64,000 nt of DNA from Mytilus californianus (lineage: Eukaryota): the NCBI RefSeq assembly GCF_021869535.1, contig NW_026262668.1, positions 27,838,001 to 27,902,000 of the forward strand. The letters are read 5' to 3'. The notes below the pieces were generated by a model that saw only the letters and a list, made by a program, of their open reading frames with translations, ran no database searches and was not told the DNA's origin. Both the position numbers and the translations under genes were made by a program. Shown one piece after another: positions 13,692 to 62,794 of this stretch; positions within the stretch are counted from its first letter, which is position 1; each line of letters opens with the position of its first letter.

Positions 13692-13878
13692 TTATCCGTT
13701 ATGCAGTCTATACCACGTCGTTGCATTAGGAACTAGACCAGAGTTGCAACCATCACTCGTGCAACAAAAATGGCAATTGAAAGCGGATGGATTTTTGACA
13801 ACTCCATATCTTTTACAATAGTCCTCATCTGCGGTTTCTACTATCCATTCTTTTCTACATATACGGTCTGTGACACAC
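13692..13878 (-). CDS. Gene 1 terminal exon, LU-like domain 4 C-half
   Basis: Phase-2 exon CVTDRICRKEW...CHFCCTSDGCNSGLVPNATTWYRLHNG-stop; AATAAA immediately downstream on the minus strand. Confidence 0.9.
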
Positions 13879-16800
13879 CTATGATAAAACAATTGAATTG
13901 CATGAAATGTTTGCTGGTCAAATTTTCCGTCAAAGTTCTTTTGTAGCAGAAATAACAAAAAAATGATAAAAAAAAATGTTGTCAGAAGTGTAATGGAGGT
14001 GAATGTTTATTTTTTGTTTTTTCTCTATTTTTGGAACTTCTGAGGAATATATTTGAATGATTTGCCTAGAAAAGACCAGATTTGTTACAAAATAGAAAAA
14101 TCTGAAAATGCAAGGATTAAAATATAACTGCTGCACCTTTTTTTATGATGTCGAGTTTTTTTTTTTTTTTTTTTTTTTTTGATTATTTGATTTCCCTTGC
14201 TGGTCGTTGAACGCAATGTAGTGGCGTCTGACTTAATGTTTTACAGTACAAACGATGTGTATTTGTGGTTGTTTATTCTCTGTCAGGTCAACAATTTGTA
14301 TTTGAATACGAACCTTTTGTAAACGTCTGCATTTCCATTTGAATCCTGAATGATATCTGTCATACAATACGGATACGCTCCATTACATTCTTTTAGCTGT
14401 GACGTAGAAACCTGTCGGCTGCTGCAGGGTATGCCATTTGACGTATCGCCACATTGGTGGCAAGAAATCTTAGCTGTAAACGATAACAAAACTTCAAGCA
14501 TGGCATTAAAGTCATGAAATATCTACTATTTTCATATCTATAGATAAATAGACAACGTATAACTATACAACTCGTGATTTTTACCTTTAATAATTCGCAT
14601 ACAATAATTATATATAGTTTTAAAAATAACAATTCTTTTGAATATTTTAAAAGGAGATGATTTAGATTGAAACCATTTTTTGATTTATCAGCAATGCAAA
14701 GTGATTTTGATGTTTGTTGTAAAATTTAGTTTTCTGTGTACATTAACGAGAAATGCTCACCTTTAGGAGTTGTCGATGTTGTGGGAACTGCTGTAATATA
14801 TTATGCAACAATTTTAAATACAACATTATCTAACAAAAGCACATATTTTTCTTGTGTTTATGCATAGATGTATAAACCGGTTTATGTAATGCATTTTTTT
14901 CTAATCTTTATAATATACAATGTGCCATTTCATGAAAATAACACTTTATAAATTTCATGCGTCCGTAATGATCCAAAAAAAGTTACATCAACATTTACTT
15001 TGGTCACAGTTTAGATCTTGAAGATAAAGAAAATGGCAGTCATGTAAAGTGGTAAAACAATAAATATTGAGACTTATTTTTTTCATGAAATGTGTTCTAT
15101 CTCACACAAAAGGTTACTGGGGGATAGAAATATGGTCATTTAATTCTTCTTCCGAACGGCATTAACACTCTTGCCAAAATGGGGCGATCGTTTGGCTGTG
15201 CAGGATGTACAAATACGCAGCCACGTCCGGTCAGAATGGGGACGTTAAATCCGATGCCTTGTGTAAAGAGAATGCCATGTTCTCTGTACGTTAAGAACCA
15301 TGTCAACAACTCTTTGAGGGGTCCGTAGGTGGCCTGTTGCAAGACAAATATTCTGTCCCTGTCTAATATACCCTTATTTTCCATTTTCAGTAAAAATTTC
15401 ACCGACCTTCATCCAGGACGGCCTCTATTACGGGACCTACCTATTGTATGTATTGTTATTTTGTTCTCGTCCTGAACATGCATGAAATATATGCCACTGG
15501 ACGTTAAGCAACCAACAATCAATCCACGAAATTGTACAAGGTAGACATTCCATATTTCCTTTCATGCATGTTTAATTAAATTTGAATTAAATAACACCTG
15601 AGTCCAGTTGTCAGATATCAACTGACCGACACTCGTGCATCTTAGTATGGAGAAGTATAAAGTCTATCAAAAGTAATTCAAGGCAAGTCTTACATTTTCC
15701 TTTTTTTCTGGTAAAATTAAGTAACACTTGTAATTACTTATCCAACATTACACGTGATTGATTTGATATTGGAGAAAACTAAGTAACTTACAACTGTTTT
15801 ACAACTTACGTATAGTATTTTAAAGTTCATCAGGTGAACAATGAAAATCAGTTACCGTGAACTACATTCCATGCTTCACTTAATTTATTAATAAGGTTAG
15901 ATCAGCTACTAGCACATGTTTTAAACAATATATTGGCTTTATACGTGCAATTTAAAAGAACTGTTTAACAATTATTCTATGTTGTAATTGAGAATAATTT
16001 AAGATGTATTCATAACGAATGTTGATAAAAGTTCCGAGAGGACCGATGGCGATAATTAAGTGTCTATTTTCGAAAACTTGTTACCTGTAGTGGAAAGTGT
16101 TGTGGAATTCGTAGTTGAAACCGTAGTAGGAGTTGTAGGAACTGAAAGTGTTGTGGAATTCGTAGTTGAAACCGTAGTAGGAGTTGTAGGAAATGAAAGT
16201 GTTGTGGAATTCGTAGTTGAAACCGTAGTAGGAGTTGTAGGAACTGAAAGAGATATTAGTGGTTATACATTTATAAAAGTTACTCAATCTGTATGTCTGT
16301 GAAGTGTTTTGTTGATAGATTATTGTTTGTTTATGTCTTTTTTTTTCATATTTTGGTTATGGTAATGCCAGTCCGTCTAAAACTCGTGATTATATGAGCT
16401 GCGTCGAATAGAAATCGACCTTATGCAAATGACTATCAATACATATGTTAACCTATTTCGGGTTGAAAAAATCTTTATGGGAAGTCCCTATATGTTTGAA
16501 AATTGAGCTGTTATAAGTAAATCAACAACACAGACCAAGATCTATCTTTTATTTCGTATTTGAATGATCCGAAATATATCAAAGTCTTATACATGTACAT
16601 GTATACGTGTATTGCTCCTTGATAGATTTCAATGTCCTAAAAGATGTACTTAGACGAAATTAATAAAATCTAGAATTTAAAATTGACACTATAAGCCAGA
16701 AGAGCATTAGTTAAGGAACAACAATAGCTAAAAATATTGATAGGTTATGGAGCTCTTTTTCGAGATATTTATTTTTTTTTAAATCGGACTTTTACCTTAT

Positions 16801-19800
16801 ATTTGCATTGGTATTATTGGAGTCTCTAATCGAAAGAAAAGAAATCTAGAATCTGCTTAAATTTTGGTAAATGACCTTTTATGAGCGATTGAAGTCTAAA
16901 ATAAAAAGACAAATGGGTATTATGGGGCAAAATATTTTACCCTGTATCGTAGGAAAAAAACAAGGAGTCCGAACATCTGACAAAAATTCCTAAACCTGAC
17001 CTAAGTATATCATTAACTGGAGGATATTGATATTTTCAAAAGCGTACACTAGAAATTCAACCAATGAAAGAAGTTTATTTTTATTTTAATGTACACAGAT
17101 TTTCATTTCATATATTGCTTTAGATTTCGAAACAGTGCATTTAAGAGAAGAGCAAAACGAGTATTTCAATAGGGAAAAGAGGCCAACGATATCAAGAGGA
17201 CAGTAAAACAGGGACTTATACAGAATCAAACTATTTCCGACCTATCCCGTTCGCTATATTTGAATCCCTTCATTCTTATGTTTTATTTACCTCCTGTCTT
17301 AGGATTTTTTCTATCATTTACGGGTTCCCCTTATTTTTAGTGTTACTTTTAAGATAGTATCTTTGGTCTTCTACGTGTTTACATCTTTTAAAACATATGA
17401 TTCAAAAATTTAATTGAATATTTTTTTACAATTATAAACAATATTGAAACCAAAATATGGTAAGCATCAGTTCGTAAATTAAAATCAAATATTCAAACTT
17501 AAGTTACATTCAGCTCATAACCATGCAATAAACAATAAAAATTTACAAATACACTTCCCTTGATAGAATTGAATTATATGCACTTTCCAAAAACGGTTCC
17601 AAAGATGTAAAAATGTAATTCAGTGATAATGTTATTGAATATTTCAGTTTCCACGACAGCATGATTTTGTATATTTGAAAGATGTTTAAAAAAGGCTATT
17701 ATTCAAAACTTTGTTTAGTAACGATATTGTAGGGTTAGGTGCTTCACATGATTTATTTTTTTGTTATACTTTCTTCTTCTACCTTTAGTTATTCCAATGA
17801 CGAGACACTTTGCCGATAGTTGACTTTGTGTATATCTTTGTATCGTTTAGTCCATAATTTGTTGTGGTAATGGCCGATCTGGGTAATGTTATGAATTTTT
17901 AATTTACTCAATTATCTAGACTAGTACTGAATTAGAGCTTGACATTTAACATTGACGCTTACCTACTGTTGAGAACCGTATTTTTACCTCTTAATGATCT
18001 TCGGCTTTATTTTTATTATAAGATTGATGCAGTATTGGCGTGTTCCTATTTACTTTTATTCAATGAATGTCGACTTTGTTAATGCTCGGACTTTATTGAG
18101 TATTGTGCGTCCCAAATATTTGCCTTGTAATTAACGCATGCTTTTTTTGTTGTTGTTATTTTACATGTTGTTTCAGTAGTATGGATAACCAACAACGATA
18201 CAGTAGTTTAACAACATAACAAAATATAACATCTAGTGGCTATCATTTGGTAATTACGATGAGCAGGGACTCAGATAATACGTCCAGCTCTAAATTACCC
18301 CTAGCATATAAACAAGAGAACCCAAGCACTTAAATCGCACATGAAGCGACGTTATATGTGCACACGTACATTTTTAGAAAAAATTGCAATATTTGTTAGT
18401 TAGTTTAAGGCAATAGGAACGCTAATTACATCTTAAAGTCAAGCTTGGAACGCAAATGACATTTTAAAGCAAAGCTTTGATAAAGCATTTGTGTGAGGTC
18501 ACGGTTCTTTATAAAGGTGCAACATCATGTGTGTTTCCTCAATAATTTGTCAAAATGACTCATATTTATTTCATTTTCACATTACTTAAATAAATAAAAC
18601 ATATGTATCAAATTGATTAATTATAATAAATTAATGTTAACGTGGTTTTATATTAATTATTAACCCGTTTGTTTACTAGGCTTCGTTGAAGACAAGAACT
18701 TCAAAATGGGAAAGTGGTTTCATAGGACAAAAAATATTGTAAAAAATATACATATCAAATGTTTAGCCGATTAAACACATAAAGTCTATAAATATCTAAT
18801 ACGAATGACCTCAAAATTGCGCCGATTGACATAATAAAAGTTGAAAAACAATCATAATTTATTATGTTGTTACTGACTGGCGTGAGGTTTTCTAACTCAA
18901 AAACATACGGAAAAAATCATATTTTATTTTATTTTTTTTATATTTCGTAGCTAATGCCCCTTTCATATGAGGAAGTATTAAGTCTATCAAAAGTTATCCA
19001 AGGCAAGTCTTACATTTTCCCTCTTTTCTGATAAAATTAAGTAACACTTGTAATTACTTATCCAACATTAAACGTGATAGATTTGATATTGAAGAAAACT
19101 AAGTGACTTACAACTTACGTAGTATTTTAAAGTTCATCAGATGAACAATGAAAATCAGTTACCGTGAACTACATTCCATGCTTCACTTAATTTAAGGTTA
19201 GATCAGTCTACTAGCACATGTTTTAAACAATATATTGGCTTTATTCGTGCAATTTTAAAAAAAAAACAGTCTAACAATTATTTTATGTTTTAATTGAGAA
19301 TAATTTACGATGTATTCATAACGAATGTTGATAAAAGTTCCGAGAGGACCGATGGCCCAAGACTACAATTAATGACCCCACTTTACGTTGTTCACGAATA
19401 AAGTTCCCTTTAATTAAAGTGTATTTTTTCTTTATTTTTTTCTTTCCTTTTCTCATACATTTCTTAGTTTTTATAAGGTGGAAATGAAAGAAGAGAGCTG
19501 AAATAATTTTTTGGATGTTTTATTTTAACTGATTTTGATATGAAAAGAGTGATTAGGCCAGGTGCAAAAAGGTAATATTTACAGTTTTCGGAACATCTCT
19601 TGACTTGTCCATAGGGGTATGGATGTGTATTGGCTAAATTTGTAAGATGTAAACGTTCAATTTTTCTGAAACTTTGATATATTTTAGGTCTTGTACTGTA
19701 CATTACACACACAAAAGATTTGACAAAAAAGCAGGTAATTTTTTTTTAATTAGACAAAACGTTATAAAGAACTAGTAGAGGAATTAATTGTGGTCTGTGG

Positions 19801-22800
19801 CCCGATGGCGATAATTAAGTGTCTATTTTCGAAAACTTGTTACCTGTAGTAGAAAGTGTTGTGGAATTCGTAGTTAAAACCGTAGTAGGAGTTGTAGGAA
19901 CTGAAAGAGATATTATACAATTATTGCCTTTGAATGAGGTCGATACGAGGTTATATCGACCTAAGAGAAGCATATTGACTGAGGACGAAGTCCGAGGTCG
20001 ATATGCTTCTCTTGGTCGATATAACACCATATTGACCTCAATCAAAGGCTACGGCTACAATATTTATATCATTAATCAACAACAGCAGGGACTCAGACAA
20101 TACATGTTGTTTCTGTAGTATGGATAACCAACAACGATACAGTAGTTTAACAACACAACAAAATATAATATCTAGTGGCTATCATTTGGTAATTATGATG
20201 AGCAGGGACTCAGATAATACGTCCAGCTCTAAATTACCCCTAGCATATCAACAAAAAAGACAACCCAAGCACTTAAATCGCACACGAAGCGACGTTATAT
20301 GTGCACACGTACATTTTTAGAAAGAATTGCAATATTTGTTAGTTAGTTTTAAGGCAATAAGAACGCTAATAACATCTTAAAGTCAAGCTTGGAACGCAAA
20401 TGACATTTTAAAGAAAAGCTTTGATAAAGCATTTGTGTGAGGTCACGGTTGTTTATAAAGGTGCACGTGGTTTCATAGGACAACAAATATTGTAAAATAT
20501 ATATATATATTTAGCCGATTAAACACATATAGCCTATAAATATTTAATACGTATGACCTCAAAATTATTGTGCTGATTGACATAATTAAAGTTGAAAAAC
20601 AATCATATGTTGTTACTGACTGCCGTGAAGTTTTCTATCACAAAAACATACGGGAAAACATTTGTTTTACATTCAATGACTGACAAAATCGAAACATGAC
20701 GTATACTTACATGTATTTGAAACTGAAGGAAGTGTACTTGAAGCAACAGGAAGTGAACTTGATACTACCGGAAGTGTTGCAGTACTTGGAACTACAGGGA
20801 GTGTTGTTGGTTGTATGAATAGTTTAATTTGGTCTGGTTTAGGATGAAGATTACATGGGGTGGTTGCATTGGATTCACAACAATAATGACAAAGAAGCTT
20901 ATTTCCTGTTTTGGAAGCATCAACACCGGTCATATTCCCTGTCAAACAGGCGTCGGTTTTTCTCGACTGTAACCATTTTCCTTTACACTGTTCTTGGGAT
21001 GCACATCTAAAAATACCATGTGTGTTACCTCCACTTGTATAAAGCTTTCATTATTTTAAGGGAAATAATCGTTATATATCAAGTGTTTTGTGTCTATTGG
21101 TTTCTGTCTCGTTGACTTAGACCCCACTTCTTCCTATATACATAAATTGTCTAAATTCATTATCTTTCAAAATTGGTATGCGGATGGTTCATATGTTTTC
21201 TGTAGTGGTTGTTGATTTTTCGATGTACTTTTTTATCTGGTGACGCTATTTTCTAATAAATAAATGAATGCATTTCAATTCTGAATGTATACTTTCGATG
21301 GTTTTTCAAATACTAATGAAAATTGATATTTTATCTTATTTATTTCATCGATAAGCCCAGTGTTTCGCTTTTTAACACGAGCCCCCATCACGATAGTTGG
21401 ACGCTGAAGTGGTAATCTAAGGTAGCAATACACAGTTAGAAGTTTAGTTTCGCATTATGGCCATGTGAATTTTTTAAATATGAAAGTTTTTGTACAATAA
21501 AATTGATTTTTAGATAGTTGAAGAATAATATAGCCTTCCAAGTGGGTTTATATGATCATTTAGATTGTTTTAGCATGTTTTATAGGCCATTTTTCTGTTT
21601 GACAGTCCGTATTTTCCTATCCGCACTGCCCTTGATCTAGAAATTATTGTACTGTTTTTCAACAAAGATTTGTTGCTCGATCTTTTCAATTCAATTTTAT
21701 GGAAAAACAAGCAGAAATGCATAAGATTTTTTGTTTACCTCTTGATAGATATAGGTCTATGGTTTCAGGAAAGGTATCACTCTAATTGATTGAAATTTTC
21801 CTTTTGACCAAATTTTTGAGACTTTTGTGGCATGTTCACTCCCCTTTTTTGCAATATTTTGTATCAAATAAATGCAGATTGTTGCCATGGTTACACCAAA
21901 AGAGATTATATTTCACCTTTTTAACTATTAAAAATGAAATCTATGGAAGATGCTCTTTCCAGAAATATACACATGCATAACACAAATAGAAAGCCTTATT
22001 TATTAGATAGGAAGGAAAAGAGGGTGGTTAAAAATTATGAGTGTCAATTTTAAGGTTTTTTCCTAACTGTGTATTGCTACCTAAGGTGCTCCGGAAGGAT
22101 TAGAAGATTTACATGTGAAACCCATCGTGTCACTCCTATAAAACACGTTGGCAAGTTATATCAAGTGATCATGTATCACGCAAAAGCCGATTGGCAATTG
22201 AATCTCGTCTTACCACGTATATGCTGTTTCATAAGTTTGAAGGGAAGTCCGAAGTTAACCGAAGTTGTGTTTTTAAAATATTTTTCACTTTGCACAAGGT
22301 TCTTGATATTTGTCATGATATATCAGATATGTAAAGTACCAAAAATTTATACTGAACCTTCTAAAATCCCTAGTTATAAGGTTCTGAGTCGTCGGATCTG
22401 TGTCATAAACCACATCATTGAGACAGAATCTTTCTGAAGGAGGACAATCTTGTACCTTATTCCCATTTTGTGGACCGGTTACAACACATTTATAGGCTGC
22501 AAAAATACAAAATAAACGATTGGTTACAGAATCGGTAAATGAACACATCAAAAATATCAGCCTTATAATTTTGTACTCAAGACGCGTGTTTTGGACAACA
22601 TTAAAAATTGGAACTCTATCAACTTTCTCAACTTGTTAGGCAAAATTAATCATGTGTATATCATCAACATCGAATACCAAACAACAATTATAAAATTTGT
22701 TTAAAGACCTTATAAAATACACACGAAATTTTGAAAATTTCCTTTTTCATATTTATAGTCAGTAAATGCTCAACTACACATGTAGTGGTCCTTCTGACTT

Positions 22801-25800
22801 TTGCTGTTACAACTGCAAACATGCACCTCGACGTAAATATTGTTACAAAACAGTATGTTGATAACGATATTGACTATTTCAGTAGTATCAAATATTCTTA
22901 AGATAACTTATGCTCCCTTTTAGTTCAGTGATGTCTCCATTGATTCTTTTTTCTACAAATCACACAAAATCACACAATCTTGTAAAATTTTATCATCCAG
23001 AAGTTTTGTTATTTGAGAAGTGGTCTTTCGATAAATCGGAATAAAACTACACCACTTGTAGTCGTTTTAATTTCTTTTTACATGATAAAAAATATAAAAA
23101 TACACAAATCGAATTTCAGTGCAAAAATTATTTATTAAAAGCCATTTGTTTTTTGCTTAATAATATCTATGTTATGGAGATAATAAATATAGTCAAGGGA
23201 TAGGTATTCCAACTGGAGCAAACTGTGTCCCATTTATTACACTGTCAGATTGAATTTTTTTTGTTACGAATCAAAGATTACAGCAAGATTAAGAAAGATC
23301 TAATGAAACAACTTTAATTAGATATTTTAACAATCTCTGCATATATTTAGACGATGTGTTCTCTGTAAACAATCCAGATTTTTCGTAATATAAAACAACT
23401 CACTCTTACTAAATCGACAAGGTATTTTTTCAACCTTGGCACTTAAATATTGCATGGCAATTGTCGTACTAAAATTTGTAATAAAGGAACAAAGTGTCCT
23501 CTTCTTTTGTTAATTGTCGTTTCCTTGGTTACGATGTTCCTTTTGTTCCCTCTAATGGAACGAACTTTTCTCATTTGGTTCGATATGCACATGTTTGCAG
23601 GGAGGTCTCAGATTTCTATGATCATACTACTTTCATTACTAGAAATGTACAACAGGGATATTGATGATCATAAATTGGTCAAAAACATCTAACTAAATTT
23701 AATCACATATCAACTTACAACTATCGATCTTAGTGTGTATTAGTGTGTACCAAATAAGTTAAGAACTTTGAGCTTGCTAAAAGTAGCTGCACACATTTTT
23801 TATACAGTAAGATATTGTTTTTTTGTATTTGTGATTTTTCTAATCAATTGAACAGTTGATTTTTTAGTCAAGTGCTTTCCCCCTTTTTGATGATTTAGAG
23901 TAAAAGGGAGACGTTTGAGATCCTAAGAAACACATGTTGATAGACATTTCTTAAGTAGGGCATGTTAGCGGTTGTCTTTTCTTATCTTTATTAAAAAAAT
24001 TTTCTTTATTTTTTTTCATTTGGGGATTTTTTTATTAAATGCTGGTCTTTTATAGCCTCTACGTTAATCCACAACTTTTTTTACCACGGCTGTTTAGAGA
24101 TTAACGTATTGTATAGACCTTATTCTAGTGTTGACGTCCATATATTGACCTCTAGATGTTTTTGAGGGTTTTGTTTTTCGCTTGATGTCTCAATGACGTA
24201 AACCCCACGTCCTCTTGGTAGAACTTTATTTGTCAGTATTATTGATTAACTTGCTATATACCTCTGTTTTGAGTTTGACCAAAGTTTGTTAAGTTTGTTG
24301 GTTTTTCCGTCATCGCATTGCAAGGTTTACCATTAGGTCCCTGACAACAGTATGTACACACGCCATTTTGAATACATTCAGTTCCGTTACCAGTGCCAAT
24401 CCAGTAATCCCAATAGCACTCTACTCTACTTGCACATCTTGAAAATATGCACGGGCATTATATTAACAAACTTTAAGTGAAAAGACCATAATTATATATC
24501 TTCTGTTAGTCTACTGATCGGGATGATGAAATGATAAAAGGGGGAGGGTTGAGATATCAAAACCTAGTTTAAACCCGCCACATTTCCTTGTGCCTGACCG
24601 AAGTATAACACTTCGCAAATAGTCGTATATTTAATCTTTATGTCTTTCGTTATTAAAAGAATTGAGTATTGATGGCAGGTCTTTGATTGTTGCTGTTTGA
24701 ATTTCATTCACAACTTTTACAGACTTGGGATGCATTAGAGCTTGCTATATATGTAAAAACCTGTCGATTGTTGATGTCTTTTGTTTGCATTTTATCGGTT
24801 CGTTGCTGTCTCATTGACGTATAACTCACATCTCCTTTTATTCTTATACTTTTTACCTCTATTTACATATAATACCTGTATGCAGGTCTTACCGTGTACA
24901 TTTATTTTTTAAGAAATGGATGCCCGTAACATATTTTAATTGCTCATTTTTAAAAGTTGAATGTTTGTGGACGTCGCATGGCGACATTTCCGTAGATTTT
25001 TACTCTTTGAAGTGAATACCCAGGGCCGTAGCGTAATGGAGGCAACTGAGGCAAATGCCTCACTTTTGAAGTGTCATTTTTTTTTTCAATTATGTATTTT
25101 ACATTATCAATATGCGAGTTTCGAGTTTCAAATTATCTACCGGCACACTACATACAGTGTGTCCAATCTGCAGCAGCGATTGTAGCTTTTACCATAGCGG
25201 TGACGGTAAAAAAATAAGTGTTCCGAATACAAATCAAAATAAAAAAATTGAAACACAAATCTTAATGTCGTTACAAAACTGGTTGAAGACGGGTTCTTTA
25301 AAGAGAAAAAAAAGAGGAAAAAGGTAACTCATGAGTATAAACACTCCCTATAAGTATGCTGGCTTATTCCTTTCCTTGGTTTATTTTTGAATCGATAACG
25401 CTATAGTTACCAATGTTTACACTATGATCAACTCACTGAACAACAAATGCTAATCGATAAAATAATTCATTGACCAAAAATATAATAATTAGTTATAATT
25501 AATTTAAACAAAATCATGAAGCACCTTTTCTATGGAAGTCTTTAATGTATAAGGCAATTCATGATTTTTATTTATCGGAGAATCGGAAAGTTTTGATTGA
25601 CCACACAGATTAACTTTAATATTGAAACTTGTTTTGTTACTTACTAGGCTAGCTATTAACAAAAAAACGCATTTCTGTTATATTTTTTTTTGTTTTTTAT
25701 TATGAATACATTGACCTCTCCCATAGTAATGCTGAAATAATCTTCTCCCGTTTCAGGCACCCGAACCCCCCTAAAAAAATTTTCGCTTCGCTCGGCTCAG

Positions 25801-28800
25801 TTGATTTGGACATGCGCTACGGCATTGATACCTCATCTGTTAATATATACTATGAACGTTTGAGTATGTTTCAATATATTTAGCAATGTCGAAAGACCTG
25901 CATAATGTCAAATTATAAAAATACTGATTGTTTAGTCTCTAAGAAAACTTGTAAGATATCCGTTGCTATCTTTGCAGTTTGGGTACTCGGTGCAATTTGG
26001 GTACCATGACGTTACATATGTCAGACAACTGAAAACAAGGACACAAATAAATAAAAGACATCTATAGGTTAGACAAGTGTCTCTTAAATTTGATAGTCCC
26101 GATTCTATGAACAGTTATAAATGAATTAAACAGAAGCTATATGTTAAAGATCTAATATCAATATTTGTCATATATTTAGTAGTAAATACAGTAGTTTTGA
26201 ATATTTGATAAATAGCCTGCTGTTTAATCGGTATCGCTCAACTTTGATGCGCACCCTTTATCACACCCTTTTATCGCATGTCTACCCTTTATCACACCCC
26301 TTTATCGCACCCCTGCTCGGATTTCTCGTTCTCGTTCTATACGGAGTCTCTCGGACAGTTCGTATATACTCTCCTGTTTAAATATATGATAAAGCGTATA
26401 AAATATGGCAAATTCGTATCACATGCCGTATCACCCTCGGCCAATATCATCCCTAGGGCCTAAAGGCCCTCGGGCTGATATTGATATCTCGGGATGATAC
26501 GGCATGTGATACGGATTTTGCCATGTATTATTCTGTATACACTATTAGCAACAATGTACTTGAATCTGCATTCAAAATAATAATCACTTAATTTTTTTTA
26601 AAACAATTTTCTTTCTTTCGTCAGGAAAACTACATCAGTGCAAGATGTGAATACCAAGATATATAATAAACCATCAAGGAGCTGTGTGCTATTCAATATG
26701 CTTCCTAATGTTTATCTATCATTTATCTTATTGTGAATACATTTTCTACATGTATCCTGATAAATTGATTAAATCAAAGATCTGCTAATAGAAGATGAAA
26801 AGTCAAGCAGCACGATCAATAATATTAGGACATGTAGGTGAAAAGATGAAAGGGATGTCTACAACACATACATCTTGTTTATGTATTTCTTTAAAGACAG
26901 CCATAGAAAAACAACAAAGTTAACTAGGAATAAGCATTGGATGAAACAGTATTGGGATTCTAATGGGCAGGTATGTCTTTATTGATTTACATGTACCTGT
27001 ATATACATACATGTATATACATATGATCATAAATTCCCTTACAATGTGAAACATTGAGATTTACTCCAAATACTTGGTGTGATTCGGGAAAGTTATAATT
27101 TTTCGGTACTTTATTTTTTCTATTTAATATCTCGTAATGTTGATATAATTTAAACGATTTTGTATAATCGAAAACATAATAATAATTCAGGAGAAAGCGA
27201 TTCACGCAATGAAATCTAAAAGATAAATTGTGTGAATTTAGAACGCGTTTTTAAACGGGATTTTAACCTAAATTATTAGTTTTACGTAAAAAATCTACTT
27301 GTTTTGTATATCTTAATATAAAATTCAAATTTTCAAAAAAAAAAACGTTTACCGCCATGAGCATTGAAATGTCATGGCGGGTCACATATGTGTTGGGGTA
27401 AAACTAGTTTTATTATACCCCAACTCTCCCTTTCTCCCTTTTTTAATCATGATCAATCATTGTGCACAAAAAAAAGATATATAAAAGAACTTTCAACAAA
27501 ATCATTTAAGAAAAGGCATTTAACGAAAAACAAAAGTAGAGTAGGCAACGAAAAACAAGTACAAACAAAATAATAGCAAACTGTATTAAACCGTATAAAA
27601 AATTATCGCAGTTACAGAAAGCAAGCTGAAACGACTAAAGCTGGTAATATGAAATACTACTATCCTTCATTTTTGTATGGATTGCTGTACTTTATAAATA
27701 ATCTCAACAGCAACATCATTAACAATATACGAAGACATGATTATGTGAAATTCTCAAGACTTACTGTATAAAATTTCAATGCAGAAAACCGTGAAGAGAA
27801 TCATTGTAGTCTCGCTTCAAACAATAAACTAGCAAATATATGCTTATTCAAAATACTAAAACCAGCGACCGAATGAATAAAAACAGTATAATTTCAATCA
27901 GAGGCGGCAGATATCAAAGGGATATTCAAACTCATAAGTCGATGACAAACTGACATCGTCATGGCCAAAAAACGAAAAAAAAACAAAAGACCAAAAGACA
28001 AATAACAGTATACAAAACACAACATAGAAGACTAAGGACTGAGCAACAAGAACCCCTACAAAAACAGAGGTTGATCTCAGGTACTTCAAAAGGGTAAGCA
28101 GATCCTGCTCCACATGTGACATCCGTCGTGTTTTCCCTATGAAATATGCTGACTAGTTAGTCTAGTTATATCGATTGATTAGGCATCACGCACTAGTGTT
28201 TTGTTAATTGACTCTTGTCTAACCCAAAAACTTCATCAAAAATATAAAAAAAAACATCGGTCATGTACATTTTCTAACCCTGAAAATTGACCAAATGTGA
28301 AATTTTGAAATTGAAACAAGTTTGGCATGATAATTTAACCATTTGGACTTTGGTTGATAGTTTTCCCATTGGCATTCATACCACATCTCCTAATTTAATA
28401 AAGGTCTCTTTTAAAGAGATCGTTGAATTTGACACACATGTCCTCTGTATATCAGTTTGGGAAAATCCATTTCTTTTATAAAAACTATATCGTGCCTTTA
28501 AATACCAGATGAAGGTTGTTCCGATGCGATGGGTTGCTTATACTTGGGAAATGCTGTGCTTTTAGTTGTTTTCTTCTATAAAACATAATTTACCTATGAA
28601 GAGTTTTTGTCCAATTACCATTATGATATATGATTTCATTGAGACAATAAGGTCTCTCCCCACTACACACAGTATAATCCATAGGAGAACAAGAAGCACT
28701 TTGATCTTCTGTACACACCAAACATTTAGTACCATTTACTGTAAAATAAGAAATAAAACAGACAGTGAGATAATTGTAACGGTAGGAGTTATTTCACAAG

Positions 28801-31800
28801 CTGAAAGAAATGTTAGTATATGTTATGATGAAATTATTCTTAACATTCCAATAGTATTACTTGAATCCTTGGCTTTCAAATATTCGGCTTTGAGCGTTCC
28901 TGATGAAGGTTAATCCAGAAAAGCGCTTCGGACGTATGAAATTTATAACGTGTTGTTTTCATTTTTTTGAAGTAATGATAAAGAGTTTCAGTTAAGAATT
29001 GCTTACATCCACTTCATTTGAACTTTGGTGGATAGTTGTCTAAATGGCAATCATACCACATCTCCTTATGTTTTTACTATATATATTCAAGCTTTAGTGC
29101 TTTCTGTTAGAAAATGTTTCCGGAAGATGGAACATATCATATTCCCACCAATTACTCCATTTAACTTCAAGTATATATGTTCTTGCAAGTTTTTTACCCT
29201 TTAGAATGTCGCGACTCCTTTGTAAAATTATGTGCAATATTTTTCACAAGTACAAGGAATAATATGCTGTTGGTCAATAATAAATAGACAATAAAATATA
29301 TAGCTGACCCGCTGCTGAAGTTGTTATGACTGTAGTTGGAGTTGTAGATGTTATAGTTGTAACTGTAGTTGGCATAGTTGGTAAAGTGGTAGGAATCGGC
29401 GTAGTTGTTGCCAACGTTGTATGGGTCGTTGTTGGTGTCGTTGTTGGTGTCGTTGTTGGTGTTGTTGTTGGTGTCGTTGTTGGTGTTGTAGTTGGTGTAG
29501 TTGTTGTTGTAGTTGGTGTCGTTGTTGTTGGAGTCGTTGTTGGCACAGGTGTTGTAGTGGTTGGTGTTGTTGTTGGCGGAGTAGGCTTAGATGTGGTTGT
29601 TGCTGTAGTTGTATGTTTTATTGTGTGCTGTGCTGAAGTGGAACCTGAACTTCCTATTGTCAAGTAGACCCAAATGAATATAAAATTCAAGCATTGCTTC
29701 ACGTGTTTTATGTAAAACAAGATATTTATAATTTAGAATACCGTCTAATCGACGACTATCTGTACTTTTAAAAATCAATCATCATCAACAGCTAAGTCAT
29801 CATCCCAGAATTATTCTACTTCTCGATCTTTGCTTCTTCCTTTTTTTTTTTTTGATTCATAGCTCGTATAATTTCCATTAAACTATTTTAGCACAGAGCA
29901 TCGCTACTTGATAACTGTTCGTTGTTACAAAAGTCAAAGTCCAAACAGATTAACAACTGTATCTTAAGTTATTTTTTAGATTTTAAATTATTGAAAATAA
30001 AATTGATGTAAGTATTAAGCCAATATTCAAATGTCCTAATACAATGTTGAATTGATAATCTTAAAGAAAAAGTTAACTCAAAGGAACATTAAAGTTAAAT
30101 AGATCGTATCATATAGTAAGAGCTCTACATCATCGTAAAGAATGTGATGTCCAATTTGACATGATATATCTTTATGGTTTGTTCCCCCTTTTCGGAAAAG
30201 TTTTGCACCGATACCTTTTTTATGTTTTCTGTGTCTCTTAAGCATATTTCTAATCAAGCAATTAAGTTTGACCCTCCATTACATCATTCCTGTTGCATTT
30301 ATAAACTGTGGTTAAAATAATATTTGGATAAGTTGAAAAGAGTAGGCCCGATAGGACCTCTTTTTGGCCCCAAAATATAGCATTTCAAAAATGTGTTAAA
30401 AATGTAAACTTTAAGCTATTAATTTGAAAGAAGAATACTTGAGTTACATAAATATTGGCTGTTTTTGACCTTACACTGCACATGCATCAGGTACTTGCAT
30501 CATTAATTCATGCAAAATTACTTAAATCTGCACAATTTTAGTATTTGTGCTAATTTTTAGACTGTTTTTGTCTAAAATGGAAGTGGCCGCACTTGTTTTC
30601 AGTCTTGATATTTAAATATATGTTGTATTTGATCATGATACATATATTATATAAAGGTTGAGACTGAACACGAATGCGGCCACTTCCAATTTAGACAAAA
30701 ACCATCTGAAAGTGACGTTTTGTGGCATAGTTGATAGATTTTTCATATTTAAGCTTGAATTTAGGCGTCTCTAATGACCAAATCAGTTCAAGTCTTTTAC
30801 AAAAACTAATTGAATCGACTGAAGAAGACACTTAAGTGTTTAAAAAATGTAAAAAATCTTTCATCAGATGTACTTCAAATTTTAGGCCGAAATAAGCCCT
30901 TAGCGGATCTTCTCCTTTCACTGAATCTTATAGAACAGACAAGTGTTAAAATAGAGAAGTTCAATCAGTTGTAAAACAAAAGTACATATATTTTGTCGGA
31001 ATGCTCTGGATAGTTTTATGATTGATGGACAATTACTAAATAGACTGGAAAACATGGCATTTTTTTTCAAAGGCAACCGATCTCAATACAGAAAAAAAAC
31101 ATATATTACAATCTTATTTGATACCAAAAATAAACAAATACATAAGTTTTACCTGTCTGCATGTATGATGGCATGTAGTTAGGGTTTATGTAAGTCTTTT
31201 CGTTGCAGAACCTGTCCTCGGGACAATGTGCAGTGCAACAATCATAGCACACAGTATTTACCGGCGGGGATGGAGATTTGCAGTCCGGATTCCTCAAAGA
31301 GCTGAGTGCAGCATTGTTCATACACACAGTTTCATTTGTTCCTCCTCTTTCATACGTTACGCCACCATTTGTGTATGTTTTCTTTAGAAAGCAGATGTCA
31401 TGTCTAACATCGAGCTGTAAATTATTATCTCTACAAATTGATCCTGTATTAAAAAAATTAAAAAATTTTACTTCGATCATATTATCTTTTTTCTATTTCC
31501 GTACAGTGATTTTGTATAATAATAATTCCCTGAATTTTCCCACCTTGTATTCCATTTAACGTTCACAGATTTGTACAAAAAAACAATTTATTGTTTTTAG
31601 TTATTGCTTGTTTACGCTATCAGTGATACTGAAGACAAAGTTATCAATGGACCAGTTAAGGAAATTTCTGACATTACATTTCGCAGTTTCATTGTCGTCT
31701 GGAACATGGAAAGTCCAAAACAAAACAAACATTACACTTAACATTTTGGGAAAGTATACTGACAATCACATTTCGGGCTTTTTGGACTGACCTTTTAATT

Positions 31801-34800
31801 ATTTTACCAAAAAAGGACTTAAATTATATTTTTTAAACGAGTTATACTGATACATGTGTACTTACTAGTTGATGGATGATTACAAACTGCGTGTGTTTCT
31901 CCTAAAATATGAAATATAATTAACAACATTTAAAATAAAAATCAATAAAATTATCAACCTGCTATGGAGGTTTAAAAGAAACAATGTTCGTGCGGTAAGT
32001 TTCATGTCTTCAATACTTGCCCTATATGCAGAATTATGTGTGAAAACGAATTTCGTGATTACCAGTGATTCAGAAAATCTTCTAAAGTACCAAGGATAAA
32101 AATTGAAACTATAATCACCAGTTACAATATATATGCAAACTTTACTGTACCAATGATATCGCTTTGTTCATATGACCCCTGTTGAAAAAAATCAAAAAAA
32201 TCAATAATTTTATATAGAATCCTGAAGTTTGATGGTGTTATTAACGTCATTAGAGTTGTCTGACCCGATGGGTTCGGAATTATAATATTGGCTTAATGCA
32301 AACTTGACCAATTATGTCTGAACTTTCATGCGACCCATGGGAGGCACATGTATGATAATGGGGTTCATGAAGCGTAATATTGTTGTTGAACTTCTCTTGA
32401 ACTTTTGAAATAGAATCATGAAAATCGATATATGATTAGATACCTAAATCATAATTAGCTTAAATTCTATTTTGATATTGAACATATGGTGTTGGCATTT
32501 AGTTATGGCCCTTTTGGGCATTGTCTCAGGGACTTCGAAAAAACGAAAAAAATGTGTCCTCGTACCCCTCCCACATTATCAAAGATTTTTTTTGTTTAAT
32601 CAAAACTGTGAAAATAATTTTGTTTTTGTCATCAGAATAAAAGAAATGACAAAATTGTATTTCGAGTAATCATTTAATATTACATGTAAAAAGTGAATTC
32701 ATATAAAGTAATTGGGATAACATATATGGGTTTTCAATATCTGTAGACATTTTCATAGTATTGTTGAATATTTTTAACCAACGAGAATTGCGAATAATAA
32801 ATTAAAAAATAACATCTTCCACTTTTAAATGAATGCTCTCCCCAATTTCTTGTGCTGGTATATGCATCGTATATTTTGTTTGTATTCTTATTTATTGCCT
32901 TACATTGATAAACTAAAAGGTGAATGTGTCTGAGAACACGAATGCCCCCGCTCAAGCTTGCTTTTCAATAGAAAATGGGACGGGCGGACGAAAAGACGGA
33001 AGGATGGAGAATCAAGGGTAACACTAACTGGCCCCTTCGCCTTGCGGCGGGGGCATAAAAACTGCAATTTTACATTCAACAATGTCACTTACATCGACAT
33101 GTTGAAAATACATTTTTGAAGTTGGCTGTCGCTCATACTTTACGAAAAATTCTTTGCCAAATATTGTAACTCAAAAATTAATGCGTACATTTATAATAAA
33201 TAGTGTTCATCATAAAACAAAAATGGAATATTTGTTAATGTGATTTCAAGACAATGCGATCTGAACTTAAATGAAAGTTTAAACAAATGCAATAGTTAAT
33301 TACATTATTCAGAAGAAACGAAACAAAAATAACAATTTCTAAATCTACAGTAGCCATTTCGTAAAATATATCAGTAATGACATCCTATACAAATTTAACA
33401 ACGGTGTATTACATAATATCCATAAAATATAATTCTTTAGGTTGGAGAAATGTTTTACGGCAATTTCAGCAGCAACATTAGAACTCTTTATAAGACAATG
33501 TTTATAGAATATTTTTGTATACCTAAGGGAAATAATCATGTCTTAAAGTGCTGAAAACATTTTACTTGAAATATCTATATAAACATGATAAAAGTTACTT
33601 CAATTTACCAGTACTGTTAGTTGTACATGAAATATGTGCCAATAACCAACAACGAATTTAATAAAACTTGCAATTGATCCGGTTGAATCGGTGTGTTTTG
33701 GATCTTACAAATGTATATATTTGTACTCACCTAAGAGTTGTATCAATACACCTACAATTATAAGAAAAAAATAAGGTTATGTCATATGAAATTGCATTTT
33801 TATTTCACTTATCTAAATATTCACAACCATATAATTGTATATAAAAACGGATATGCGGATGTGAATTGATTGCAGTACTTTTTTTTACTTAAAGGTTAAT
33901 ACAATTCAACATGAAATATAGTATTATACGAGCAAGAGGGGGGAAACAAGTAAAATACGCTATATGCGTTTTTCAGAATAGTCTAATACGCTTAGATAGA
34001 ATATGATTCATGAATAATGTTCTTCTTTGAAACCACCCCTCCTTTTCATTAGTCGGTGTAGAAAGTTTTTGAAAAGTTCTAATGAGAATAATTAAGCGCT
34101 AACATCTTTTATCACCGAGATACGTAAACACCTATGAATGCAATATTGGTGTGTTTAATTAAAAAATGAAGATCTGACAGTAGAAAAATAAAATCTTTAT
34201 TAGCTATAGATCCCATAGTGCCAGGTGATCTTTTCTCATCACTTGGCGTCCGTCGTCGTCGTCGTCCGTAAATTTTTACAAAAATCTTCTCCTCTGAAAC
34301 TATTTGGCCAAATTAACTAAACTTGGCCACAATCGTCGTTTGGGTATCTAGCGTAGGAAATGCAACTGATGACACCGCCTGCCAACCAATATGGCTGACA
34401 TAGCTAAAATTTAAAAAAAAATGCCAAAAGAACCAAAGATGTATAAATATTTAACAGCTATATGACAAAAGGAACCTTACAAATTGCCTTAACCATCTGG
34501 GTTTAACTCTGCAAGGAGAAGTAAGAACCTTAGATTCTTAAAATTTTCTAAATTCATCAATGGGAAATTCATAATGTATGTTATAAATCCTAAACGTCCG
34601 AAGCGCTTTTCTGTATTTTGATATATCAATTTGCCAAACTTAACAAATATGTTGTCGATATAAGGGACAGGATCTTGATAAAAATAATTTCTTAAAACTA
34701 TATGAATGTATTAAAACTAAGGTTGCCTATATTTTTCTTAGATGGTCTTGGATTTTCTGTTTAGGTTTAGACATTTTCACAGCGACATTCATATAATTCT

Positions 34801-35446
34801 TTGTTGTGCTTTACTATGTGTGATTTTTTTAAAATCCAACGACACTCTTCTTTTATTTCCGAGTTCAAGATGTAGGTAGCCTCAATGTGCAGGTGTTTTA
34901 TGTGTAGATAACTAAACGGGGATAGTTTAGGTGCATACATACCTAGTTTAACCCCATCACATGTCCTTCCTGTACCAACTTAGTTTATCTGGTCCTTTTG
35001 ATGTATATTTTGATGTACTGTTTTTATATTTTTTTGTTATTTATATTATTCTTTTTTAAATGTCTTAATTTAGAATTCAAGGATGGTCATTATGACCTCG
35101 TTTATAGTTACGATGTTTCATTTCTGATCTTTTAACAGAAGAACCTACTGGTTACACTTTGTACCATGTTTACCCATACGAATGTATTACCGATTAAATG
35201 GTTCATACATCTGTTACAGGACATGAATTTTGGATAACATGACAGATAATACTTTTATAACAGGCGATGCCTCCTCTTTCGATACACATCTATTAGTCTG
35301 TTTCCATATTTGCCTTTTAACTAGACTTTGCTAGTGGCATTTAAGTAAATTCGATATTATACTTTATGATAAACGCAAAGCTAAAATATTTACAAAACAA
35401 GTACAAACAAACCTGAAATCAAAAAGAAGGAAATATTCCAGTTCAT
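13692..35446 (-). CDS. Gene 1: secreted multi-domain Ly6/uPAR (three-finger)-like protein with mucin-like Thr/Pro linkers, 13 coding exons, 679 aa
   Basis: Exons: 35446-35413, 33751-33731, 31443-31153, 29653-29309, 28738-28594, 24437-24262, 22496-22358, 21006-20711, 19900-19844, 16243-16085, 14790-14761, 14473-14314, 13878-13692. All have AG/GT boundaries and compatible phases; the sum is 2040 nt with no internal stop and a terminal TAA. N-terminus MNWNISFFLISGVLIQLLG-SIC is signal-peptide-like. Four domains end in the C-x2-CC-x(4-10)-CN motif characteristic of LU domains. Additional small phase-1 exons could have been missed. Confidence 0.85.
14314..14473 (-). CDS. Gene 1 LU-like domain 4, N-half
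   Basis: 160-nt phase 1-2 exon KISCHQCGD...PC...EC...PYCMTDII...VYKR. Confidence 0.9.
14761..14790 (-). CDS. Gene 1 30-nt linker exon (AVPTTSTTPK)
   Basis: tatattacag|CAGTT...TAAAG|gtgagc; phase 1-1. Confidence 0.8.
15115..15524 (+). mobile_element. SINE with Nin/Deu-like central domain
   Basis: Homologous to 37011-37422 (opposite strand); GGACGTTAAATCCGATGCC core; (CAAT)n tail. Confidence 0.65.
16085..16243 (-). CDS. Gene 1 Thr-rich linker exon with three 51-nt (17-aa) repeats
   Basis: 159-nt phase 1-1 exon, (V/F)PTTPTTVSTTNSTTLS x3. Confidence 0.8.
19354..19802. mobile_element. 449-bp MITE, 20-bp imperfect TIR, 4-bp TSD CGAT
   Basis: GGCCCAAGACTACAATTAAT / ATTAATTGTGGTCTGTGGCC; empty site at 16044-16047 in the duplicated block. 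Confidence 0.85.
19844..19900 (-). CDS. Gene 1 short Thr-rich linker exon
   Basis: 57-nt phase 1-1 exon PTTPTTVLTTNSTTLSTT; duplicate of 16085-16243. Confidence 0.75.
19910..20070. repeat. Fold-back element
   Basis: GCCTTTGAATGAGGTCGATA... / ...TATTGACCTCAATCAAAGGC; apex GGAC-GAA-GTCC. Confidence 0.8.
20711..21006 (-). CDS. Gene 1 LU-like domain 3, C-half plus Ser/Thr/Pro linker
   Basis: 296-nt phase 2-1 exon CASQEQCKGKW...LCHYCCESNATTPCNLHP..., donor T|GTAAGT; paralog 47291-47517. Confidence 0.9.
21421..22081. mobile_element. 661-bp MITE, 19-bp perfect TIR, TAA TSD (PIF/Harbinger-like)
   Basis: GGTAGCAATACACAGTTAG / CTAACTGTGTATTGCTACC flanked by TAA on both sides. Confidence 0.75.
22358..22496 (-). 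CDS. Gene 1 LU-like domain 3, N-half
   Basis: 139-nt phase 1-2 exon AYKCVVTGPQ...FCLNDVVY...RDFRR; paralog 48248-48386. Confidence 0.88.
24262..24437 (-). CDS. Gene 1 LU-like domain 2, C-half
   Basis: 176-nt phase 2-1 exon CASRVECYWDYWIG...CTYCCQGPNGKPCN; absent from the ORF track; paralog 48695-48870. Confidence 0.88.
26397..26530. repeat. Fold-back element
   Basis: TGGCAAATTCGTATCACATGCCGTATCA / TGATACGGCATGTGATACGGATTTTGCCA; apex GGGCC-TAAA-GGCCC. Confidence 0.8.
28594..28738 (-). CDS. Gene 1 LU-like domain 2, N-half
   Basis: 145-nt phase 1-2 exon VNGTKCLVCTEDQSASC...YCLNEIIYHNGNWTKTLHR; paralog 52755-52899. Confidence 0.88.
28894..28935 (+). ncRNA. Minimal type I hammerhead ribozyme, core intact
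   Basis: GCGUUC-CUGAUGA-AGGUUAAUCCA-GAAA-AGCGCU-UC-GGACGU: stem I pairs, both core boxes intact, palindromic GCGC loop 3, UUC cleavage triplet. Stem II is short and atypical. Confidence 0.7.
29309..29653 (-). CDS. Gene 1 Thr/Pro-rich mucin-like linker exon (TTPT repeats)
   Basis: 345-nt phase 1-1 exon, gacaatag|GAAG...GCGG|gtcagc; ORF track 29274-29720. Confidence 0.88.
31153..31443 (-). CDS. Gene 1 LU-like domain 1 (9 Cys, single exon)
   Basis: 291-nt phase 1-1 exon, GSICRDNN...VCYDCCTAHCPEDRFCNEK; paralogous to 62236-62526. Confidence 0.9.
32910..33062 (+). mobile_element. Minimal HINE-like element
   Basis: ATGCCCCCGC / GCGGGGGCAT inverted pair, GGAC-type microsatellite remnant, A-rich flanks. 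Confidence 0.6.
33731..33751 (-). CDS. Gene 1 21-nt micro-exon (GVLIQLL, signal peptide part 2)
   Basis: ttataattgtag|GTGTATTGATACAACTCTTAG|gtgagt; phase 1-1; completes the hydrophobic core. Confidence 0.75.
34215..34420 (-). mobile_element. HINE-like fragment
   Basis: (GTC)n microsatellite followed by aaaatcttctcctctgaaacta..., the reverse complement of the HINE repeat type seen at 50.4-50.7 kb. Confidence 0.5.
35413..35446 (-). CDS. Gene 1 first coding exon (MNWNISFFLIS, signal peptide part 1)
   Basis: Acceptor tattatcag at 35471 implies an upstream non-coding exon. ATG at 35446, donor CAG|GTTTGT, phase 1. Confidence 0.7.
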
Positions 35447-62526: not shown

Positions 62527-62794
62527 CTGAATTAAATAATGATAAATGTCATTTTACTTTGATAATATTATCTTCTTCAAATAAAGTGACTGTATCTTTT
62601 GTATGCTGTTATTCTTAATTCTCACGTTTCCTCAATATATATTTTTGTCTTTACATGTATAAGCTGTCAGTGACAAATCATATTTTCAACAATTATTGGA
62701 AAGTGTTAAATCGTCTCAAAACGTATTCTATGTTTATTGATAGTAGAATATCATGTTTTCTGAGTACGGTTGTCTATGGTATACCCATATGTAC

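Follow-up and report, generated by a model that had tools for sequence, protein, structure and literature searches.

A predicted secreted bivalve protein with four Ly6/uPAR-type domains and two mucin-like stalks, encoded by a 14-exon gene of Mytilus californianus

Introduction

Domains of the Ly6/uPAR (LU), or three-finger, type are known mainly as single modules, either glycosylphosphatidylinositol (GPI)-anchored or secreted, as toxin scaffolds and as receptor ectodomains. Human C4.4A (LYPD3) combines several LU domains with a Ser/Thr/Pro-rich, O-glycosylated region. It has been described as a multi-LU, glycolipid-anchored protein (PMC6600238, PMC7053344, PMC4864438). Here we describe a gene, termed gene A, on the minus strand (35446..13692) of a 64,000-nucleotide stretch of Mytilus californianus DNA (assembly GCF_021869535.1, contig NW_026262668.1, positions 27,838,001 to 27,902,000 of the forward strand; hereafter the window). 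Gene A is a real, transcribed mussel gene. Its product belongs to the LU superfamily, of which it is a bivalve-conserved variant that had not been characterised. It has four LU domains (D1–D4), two inter-domain mucin-like stalks and no anchor, and within an extracellular layer it would serve as a soluble binder or cross-linker with several binding sites.

LU genes typically consist of a signal-peptide exon followed by two exons per LU domain. The two exons have phase-1 introns on either side, are parted by an intron at the loop-2 tip, and recur with each added domain (PMC6600238, 2019). A 2026 survey of invertebrates (PMC13719153) found about 83 LU genes per mollusc genome, with "LU-only" as a standard architecture, and mucin-like linkers are unmentioned in it. 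As the pipeline of this survey relies on domain annotation, the four-LU family described here may well lie outside its census.

Gene structure

The window is AT-rich (about 32% GC) and contains no Ns. From 35446 to 13692 its minus strand carries a chain of short open segments, each rich either in Cys or in Ser/Thr. These form the 14 exons of gene A, with AG at every acceptor, GT at every donor, compatible phases and no internal stop, as established by exon-by-exon bookkeeping:

Exon 1, 35413..35446, minus strand: ATG and start of the signal peptide (MNWNISFFLIS), phase-1 donor; supported by sequence and phase, and 81-86% conserved, with the promoter region, in the first exon of paralogue B.
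Exon 2, 33731..33751, minus strand: 21-nt micro-exon GVLIQLL, hydrophobic core of the signal peptide, phase 1-1; a collinear island in both paralogues, with AG/GT borders in both.
Exon 3, 31866..31901, minus strand: 36-nt micro-exon ETHAVCNHPST, phase 1-1, first Cys of D1; Cys, frame and AG/GTAAGT borders kept in paralogue B.
D1 exon, 31153..31443, minus strand: 96 codons, 9 Cys, ending ...CYDCC...CN; predicted divergent three-finger domain, from an AlphaFold2 model and structure search.
Stalk 1 (Thr/Pro-rich; the Thr exon), 29309..29653, minus strand: 114 codons, 81% Ser/Thr/Pro, 12-nt tandem period, phase 1-1; equivalent Pro/Thr/Ser-rich (PTS) region in the oyster and scallop proteins.
D2a, 28594..28738, minus strand: 5 Cys, phase 1 in, phase 2 out; reached by the loose end of a run X1 contig at 24439; 94% identical to M. 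coruscus CAC5415493.1.
D2b, 24262..24437, minus strand: 7 Cys, CTYCC...CN, phase 2 in, phase 1 out; spliced joint 22496/24262; 98% identical to CAC5415493.1.
D3a, 22358..22496, minus strand: 3 Cys; X1 spliced joints at both ends.
D3b, 20711..21006, minus strand: 7 Cys, CHYCC...CN and the start of stalk 2; joint 21006/22358 and loose end from 19900; matches oyster residues 329-401 (E 2e-18).
ST_a, 19844..19900, minus strand: Ser/Thr cassette of 57 nt, phase 1-1; in an X1 contig, with loose ends into D3b (upstream) and into the 30-nt exon at 14790 (downstream).
ST_c, 16085..16243, minus strand: Ser/Thr cassette of 159 nt (three 51-nt units), phase 1-1, inclusion putative; AG/GT borders and open frame, skipped in the X1 contig.
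ST_d, 14761..14790, minus strand: Ser/Thr micro-exon of 30 nt, AVPTTSTTPK, phase 1-1; X1 loose end, AG/GTGAGC borders.
D4a, 14314..14473, minus strand: 5 Cys; sub-threshold Pfam QVR match; oyster residues 567-615 (E 2e-14).
D4b, 13692..13878, minus strand: 7 Cys, CHFCC...CN, short hydrophilic tail, TAA and AATAAA; oyster residues 617-672 (E 4e-22), the tail being kept in oyster, Saccostrea and scallop.

The stop codon TAA (13694..13692) is followed directly 3' by two AATAAA signals. With exon 3, the gene comprises 14 exons and 691 codons; without it, 13 exons and 2040 nt, i.e. 679 codons and the stop. A first-pass annotation, made from the sequence of the window, had described 13 exons and a stop-free frame of 679 residues. 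Its exons, borders and length are exact for the set it considered; one 36-nt exon had been overlooked.

Exon 3 is supported by comparison with paralogue B, a tandem copy on the same strand upstream of gene A, whose D1, D2a, D2b, D3a and D3b exons are 87-97% identical to those of gene A. In the 5' regions of the two genes (including DNA past the window end), collinear similarity is confined to three islands. The first holds exon 1 and the promoter region, the second is the 21-nt exon, and the third is a 36-nt segment bordered in each gene by AG and GTAAGT; the only other matches are the end of the D1 alignment and a short repeat that is not collinear. The peptide encoded by the 36-nt segment is ETHAVCNHPST in gene A and GTSASCSHSST in paralogue B. 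An unbiased scan upstream of D1, in which phase-1/1 exons containing a Cys were ranked, placed exon 3 first in gene A and, in a third D1 copy described below, a 33-nt exon (STKICHSPAS) with a GTAAGT donor. Exon 3 makes the Cys count of D1 even, 10 instead of 9.

Phase-1 introns lie at every module boundary of gene A, as had been claimed for all domain and linker boundaries. D2, D3 and D4 fit the two-exon build with phase-1 flanks, and each is divided by a phase-2 intron within an Arg codon directly before a Cys (AG/A in D2 and D3, AG/G in D4). The first-pass annotation took this Cys to be the sixth in all three domains, which is correct for D2 and D4; in D3, which is short of one Cys pair compared to D2 and D4, it is the fourth. 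D1 is split otherwise: a micro-exon of 11 codons precedes a single large exon.

Transcript evidence

The survey of public sequencing runs comprised 18 runs of one organism label, each with 6-8% of the sampled words, and a raw RNA run, X21, labelled with the source species. Reads and contigs were mapped to positions 18450-24449 (6 kb). Contigs of run X1, which are ~1-2% divergent from the window, contain two exact spliced joints, 21006/22358 between D3a and D3b (depth 170) and 22496/24262 between D2b and D3a (depth 185), each with CT..AC ends that correspond to GT..AG on the minus strand. Three loose ends add to these. The one at 19900 continues into the last bases of D3b, and that at 24439 runs 28 nt into the end of D2a. 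The third, of 255 nt at 19844, begins with 30 nt that match only 14790..14761 within the window, with 2 mismatches. One X1 contig therefore contains D3b, ST_a, ST_d and 225 nt more. The five junctions that touch the mapped 6 kb thus all have read support, exact to the base, two as spliced joints and three as loose ends, in agreement with the splicing proposed earlier except that ST_c is skipped. Together with the collinear matches to oyster and scallop proteins (E 1e-14 to 4e-22 for the larger pieces), these five junctions exclude a chance origin of the exon chain.

The X1 contig joins ST_a straight to ST_d and skips ST_c. The skip may be due to alternative splicing, to a haplotype that lacks the duplication, or to an assembly in which the repeat was collapsed. 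At the 3' end of the gene, the D4a-D4b junction is supported by protein comparison: in exon-by-exon BLASTP, D4a and D4b match oyster residues 567-615 and 617-672, with exactly one residue, the split Arg, between them. D2a and D2b are related in the same way to M. coruscus residues 125-171 and 173-230, again separated by exactly the one split Arg.

Coverage in runs X10 and X19 is almost only of intronic high-copy repeats (19250-20050 and 21250-22250), where the summed contig depth reaches 1e4-2.5e5 and many reads exit into unrelated sequence. These repeats are probably transposable elements that are also transcribed. The word share of the other 17 runs labelled "RNA?" may come in part from such transcribed repeats, and we do not claim expression of the gene there.

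Three-finger fold of the LU domains

Domain searches were run exon by exon or on homologues. D1 was modelled with AlphaFold2 (AF2) from the window's own exon and 15 aligned sequences, giving a predicted local distance difference test (pLDDT) score of 87.4 and a predicted template modelling (pTM) score of 0.80. For D2, residues 124-217 of M. coruscus CAC5415493.1 were modelled with 26 aligned D2/D3/D4 modules (pLDDT 71.9, pTM 0.65).

The models show D1 and D2 as three-finger domains, in which three beta-hairpin loops extend from a disulfide-rich core. Among 48,161 representatives of the PDB, the top 38 structural matches of the D1 model are all three-finger proteins, led by Lypd6b and ALK1 (Z 5.9), and the rest fall below Z 3. 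The next neighbours of D1, found by an aligner independent of Foldseek, are TbRI, BMPR-IB, ALK2 and Lynx2. For D2, the top 39 of the 48,161 are all three-finger proteins. The best of these is CD59, with Z 7.9 and a root-mean-square deviation (rmsd) of 2.4 Å for 69 of 78 residues; Lypd6b, Lynx2, Prod1, GPIHBP1, CD177, uPAR, TEX101 and C4.4A are further neighbours, and the next match is at Z 3.1. In Foldseek searches, three-finger proteins account for all top 50 matches of D2 and nearly all of those of D1, at E-values of 0.017 or weaker. The assignment of D1 and D2 is based on the uniformity of these structure match lists and on the sharp drop in Z that follows.

D3 and D4 align to D2 with all cysteines in register and would, from this alignment, adopt the same three-finger fold. 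Thus the three-finger domains proposed in the first-pass annotation agree with the models of D1 and D2, which match only three-finger proteins, and with the alignment of D3 and D4 to D2. Profile-profile comparison (hhalign) relates D1 to the D2-D4 profile with E 4e-5. The language-model neighbours of D1 are three-finger families, including the TGF-beta receptor II and activin-receptor domains, with scores below 0.9 that serve as a lead only. A sequence search of the PDB with the D2-D4 profile returned weak matches (E >= 0.08), seven of the eight being three-finger proteins.

All four domains close with CC-x(4-9)-CN and so keep the Asn that is invariant after the last Cys of LU domains. D1 has 10 Cys (with exon 3), D2 12, D3 10 and D4 12. 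The extra Cys pair of D2 and D4, and the Cys of CxxCC, are additions to the basic ten-Cys LU pattern. The Pfam matches to LU-clan families are all below threshold, so membership of the LU superfamily is assigned from the fold and the Cys pattern, not from sequence profiles. D2a matches UPAR_LY6 with E 1.6e-3 and 19.3 bits (cut-off 24.8) over profile positions 1-43 of 82, and D3a matches the N-terminal half of Toxin_TOLIP with 14.2 bits (cut-off 21.2). D4a matches QVR, a Ly6-like family, with E 0.019 and 16.4 bits (cut-off 27.3) over positions 1-49 of 86. The D4 domain of the oyster protein matches UPAR_LY6 over positions 3-81 of 82 (16.3 bits, E 0.014). Pfam gave no match for D1, none to LU families for the full-length oyster and scallop proteins, and nothing at threshold for the M. 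coruscus D2.

Stalks, secretion and absence of an anchor

Stalk 1 consists of 81% Ser, Thr and Pro. The cassettes of stalk 2 are built of 51-nt units, contain 78-79% Ser/Thr/Pro and include NxS/T sequons. Both stalks have the PTS composition and the tandem repeats that characterise mucin-like glycoproteins, with O-glycans predicted. The PTS regions are short, at about 115 aa and 80-130 aa.

The N-terminus encoded by exons 1 and 2 is hydrophobic, and those of the oyster and scallop proteins are classic signal peptides. Past the signal peptide there is no hydrophobic stretch in the exon pieces, the highest 15-aa Kyte-Doolittle mean being 1.23, and the orthologues are alike in this. The tail after the last CN of D4, SGLVPNATTWYRLHNG, consists of 16 hydrophilic residues. 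The layout of signal peptide, LU1, Thr-rich region, LU2, LU3, Ser/Thr-rich region and LU4 without a hydrophobic C-terminal tail, as first proposed, is borne out by the exons, the tail and the orthologues. The view of the product as soluble also fits the lack of a hydrophobic stretch and the conservation of the short hydrophilic tail. GPI anchoring was considered and rejected: the D4 tail is hydrophilic and carries no C-terminal hydrophobic signal by Kyte-Doolittle analysis, in the orthologues as well.

Comparison with known LU proteins

C4.4A comes closest in its combination of modules, and the D2 model matches its structure (6iom) with Z 5.2. However, C4.4A has two LU domains, one Ser/Thr/Pro-rich region after them and a GPI anchor, whereas gene A encodes four LU domains and two inter-domain stalks, without an anchor. 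CD177 (four LU domains) and uPAR/PLAUR (three) share with D2-D4 of gene A the multi-LU organisation with two exons per domain and phase-1 flanks (PMC6600238), and the D2 model matches both with Z 6.0-6.1. Both carry a GPI anchor, and their domains are packed tightly with short linkers between them, in contrast to the long stalks that separate the domains in gene A. In addition, their N-terminal LU domain is devoid of the 7-8 disulfide, while the domains of gene A contain 10 or 12 Cys.

The position of the intra-domain intron also differs from the loop-2 tip of generic LU genes. In the D2 model, loop 2 is a hairpin of residues 31-51 whose tip lies at 40-42; the intron falls at Arg49 before Cys6, at the base of strand D and 7-9 residues away from the tip.

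D1 resembles the ectodomains of ALK1, TbRI and BMPR-IB (Z 5.5-5.9, rmsd 2.7-3.1 Å for 65-73 residues) and, with an rmsd of 4.6 Å over 74 residues, Lypd6b. Unlike the type I receptors and Lypd6b, gene A encodes no kinase, transmembrane segment or GPI anchor, and the identity of D1 to these proteins is 15-18%. VWD, C8, TIL, CTCK and SEA domains were searched for with Pfam in the window exons and in the full-length relatives, and none was found.

Relatives in bivalves and other molluscs

A profile search with D1 returned 12 matches among 1.84 billion representative proteins. The D1 motifs KKTYT, ERGGTN, NPDC and CYDCC occur, among these matches, in bivalves only. A word-based protein search with D1 gave a single foreign genomic open reading frame (ORF), and a second one, starting from the oyster protein, recovered only relatives from oyster, Saccostrea and Haliotis.

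Mytilus is represented by two database entries, both apparently mis-built: a fragment of 232 aa from M. coruscus (CAC5415493.1), with 92-98% identity to gene A, and a model of 367 aa from M. edulis (CAG2249630.1). The M. coruscus model begins inside an intron and lacks the greater part of the Thr exon; that of M. edulis has two D1 domains fused and overruns the Thr-exon donor into the intron ("SAAGQLY..."). The gene was earlier called hidden, which is apt for the Mytilus annotations, where only these mis-models (232 and 367 aa) exist, and does not extend to oyster and scallop, for which full-length RefSeq models are available.

These full-length relatives are Magallana gigas LOC105320250 (XP_011416608.3, "mucin-5AC isoform X2", and the "ShKT domain-containing protein" A0A8W8LCQ1), C. 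angulata LOC128157077 and the Argopecten irradians "mucin-2-like" proteins XP_069122097-100 (isoforms of 608-738 aa). The M. gigas LOC105320250 cluster comprises proteins of 676-680 aa, and about ten Logan contigs of 2.07-2.28 kb, which are probably transcripts, encode the full-length protein. The oyster and scallop proteins share with gene A the module order signal peptide, D1, Thr stalk, D2, D3, Ser/Thr stalk and D4, as well as the short tail kept after the last CN, and the exons are collinear with them at 32-52% identity. There are also differences. The M. gigas orthologue has an extra ShK module in stalk 2 (residues 480-560, PF01549, E 7e-6, above the cut-off), which mussel and scallop are without, and the oyster D1 has three more Cys at its start than the mussel D1. 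The scallop gene has alternative stalk and D4 blocks, with isoforms that differ by a 15-aa Ser/Thr cassette. Judged by sequence, the oyster and scallop proteins are orthologues or close family members of gene A, and on the same comparisons the family is conserved in pteriomorph bivalves (mussels, oysters and scallops).

A D4-type module with the kept tail CN-x-G-x-[LV]-P... closes otherwise different PTS-rich mollusc proteins, namely oyster "mucin-5AC" and "integumentary mucin C.1-like" proteins and a 908-aa protein of Haliotis rufescens. The Haliotis protein also contains five further LU-like repeats and ShK-like modules. The D4-type module with its tail is always the last one. It is a tentative and rather doubtful idea that the D4-type module might serve as a terminal assembly or cross-linking module of mollusc-specific secreted mucin-like proteins, in the role that cystine-knot and VWD domains have in the gel-forming mucins of vertebrates. 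Exon shuffling, suggested at the outset as the origin of the gene, fits the symmetric phase 1-1 modules, the ShK insert in stalk 2 of the oyster and the use of the D4-type module as the end of other mollusc proteins.

The names of the relatives are all automatic ("mucin-5AC", "integumentary mucin C.1-like", "ShKT domain-containing", "mucin-2-like", "uncharacterized"). Literature searches by the accessions and gene identifiers of the relatives and by mucus and three-finger keywords found, in the library searched, no paper naming or characterising the family. This agrees with the first-pass annotation, which had recognised no characterised family.

Proposed function and alternatives

The architecture of gene A is supported by the evidence above, and from the general behaviour of LU domains and PTS regions we infer a role for the protein. 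The 14-exon gene would give a product of about 640-690 aa, depending on the inclusion of Ser/Thr cassettes, which is predicted to be secreted. Both stalks would be densely O-glycosylated, hence stiff, extended and hydrated, and would hold apart four disulfide-locked modules able to bind proteins. In an extracellular layer such as mucus, the epithelial coat or the extrapallial fluid, the protein could then be a soluble binder or cross-linker with several binding sites, and not a receptor of the cell surface or a small toxin that diffuses. Mucus, defence and adhesion, the functions suggested in the first-pass annotation, are putative. The length of the stalks would be tunable by the phase-1/1 cassette exons, as the scallop isoforms with the 15-aa cassette suggest.

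Several observations weigh against this interpretation. The Z scores of 5.9-7.9 are modest in absolute terms, and the D2 model, with a moderate pLDDT of 72, is of the M. coruscus copy (94-98% identical) and not of the joined exons of the window. No Pfam LU model reaches its gathering score on any exon. Splicing is seen in one run only, X1, which is labelled "RNA?" and carries a different organism label (98-99% identical), and X21, the raw RNA of the source species, gave zero exon coverage for the 6% of reads sampled in the mapped 6 kb. As RNA mapping covered 18450-24449, the first three exons, the Thr exon and the junction of D4a with D4b rest on conservation.

The apparently restricted expression, strong in X1 and absent in the sampled X21 reads, would also suit a structural component of an extracellular matrix (the shell organic matrix, byssus or extrapallial matrix), in which the LU domains were disulfide knots and the stalks spacers. 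Many bivalve matrix proteins are likewise secreted, repetitive and Cys-rich. We nevertheless regard such a role as unlikely, since acidic, Gly/Ala-rich, DOPA-type (Tyr/Lys-rich) and chitin-binding motifs are all missing from the exons, Pfam returned no domain of a matrix type, and LU domains are typically protein binders (PMC6600238).

The structural neighbours of D1 (the ALK1, TbRI, BMPR-IB and ALK2 ectodomains and Lypd6b, Z 5.5-5.9), its language-model neighbours among TGF-beta receptor II and activin-receptor domains, and the resemblance of D2 to Lynx2, Lypd6b and CD59 raise the question of a ligand trap or decoy, or a prototoxin-like modulator, acting on nicotinic receptors or on TGF-beta/Wnt-type ligands. 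However, likeness within the three-finger fold, at identities of 12-29%, does not predict the ligand, and receptor ectodomains are tied with toxins and Ly6 proteins within one Z unit. Mucin stalks are, moreover, unusual in signalling decoys. We thus consider this function quite unlikely.

Homology to the gel-forming mucins MUC2 and MUC5AC, which the RefSeq names "mucin-2-like", "mucin-5AC" and "integumentary mucin C.1-like" and the presence of two PTS stalks might suggest, is very improbable and was rejected: neither the exons nor the full-length relatives have the VWD-C8-TIL assembly, a C-terminal cystine knot (CTCK) or SEA in Pfam searches, the PTS regions are short, and the names mirror only the Thr/Pro composition. 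That the model joins two genes, or is a decaying duplicate or pseudogene, is hardly credible and was likewise rejected, because, although paralogue B is without D4 or a recognisable 3' end and the Mytilus database models of the locus are fragmentary, each of the 14 exons has an open frame and consensus splice sites, the X1 contig spans D3b, ST_a, ST_d and 225 nt more, and D1-D4 occur in one chain in the oyster and scallop proteins.

If the D4-type module does serve in terminal assembly or cross-linking, the mollusc proteins that it closes would escape Pfam-based censuses of mucins and of LU proteins alike. Since gene A and its relatives score below threshold with every Pfam LU model, surveys by domain annotation, of invertebrate three-finger proteins as well as of mucins, have probably overlooked the family. 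The protein scaffolds of bivalve mucus and extracellular coats are poorly known, and the product of gene A is a candidate for one of them. The gene is a clear example of the shuffling of phase-1 modules (LU, PTS cassettes and ShK). It represents neither a new fold nor a new principle. RefSeq already lists its orthologues, though under names that say little; for the mussel, where annotations so far hold only fragments, a corrected gene model is now available.

Paralogues and internal duplications

Paralogue B occupies 47291-64000 of the window and continues past its end to about contig position 27,907,940. Its exons are E1', E2', E3', D1' (83% amino acid identity), D2a', D2b', D3a' and D3b', and its Thr stalk is much shorter (~35 aa, 57931..57779). 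D3b' closes with a phase-1 donor, GTACGT, at ~47291, and the 11 kb between it and gene A contain no Ser/Thr or D4-like exon. Paralogue B is possibly a truncated copy, or else a variant with three domains.

The third D1-type domain lies on the minus strand of the same contig at 6147904-6148197, 21.7 Mb away, and is 47% identical; it is the only other copy in the 1.65-Gb genome. Its own 33-nt Cys micro-exon is located about 1.06 kb upstream, and exons resembling D2-D4 were not seen at distances of up to about 20 kb. This copy may belong to a shorter type composed of D1, stalk and LU, like C. virginica LOC144624862.

Gene A itself contains recent segmental duplications, 92-99% identical, between 15646-16250 and 18966-19907 and between 18162-18926 and 20101-20669. 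ST_c is a recent internal duplicate of the ST_a unit with its flanking intron. These intragenic duplications suggest that the expansion of stalk 2 is ongoing. Elsewhere in the window, the longest ORF, for which Pfam gave no family at threshold, starts with an ATG and encodes 335 aa on the minus strand at 5118-6125.

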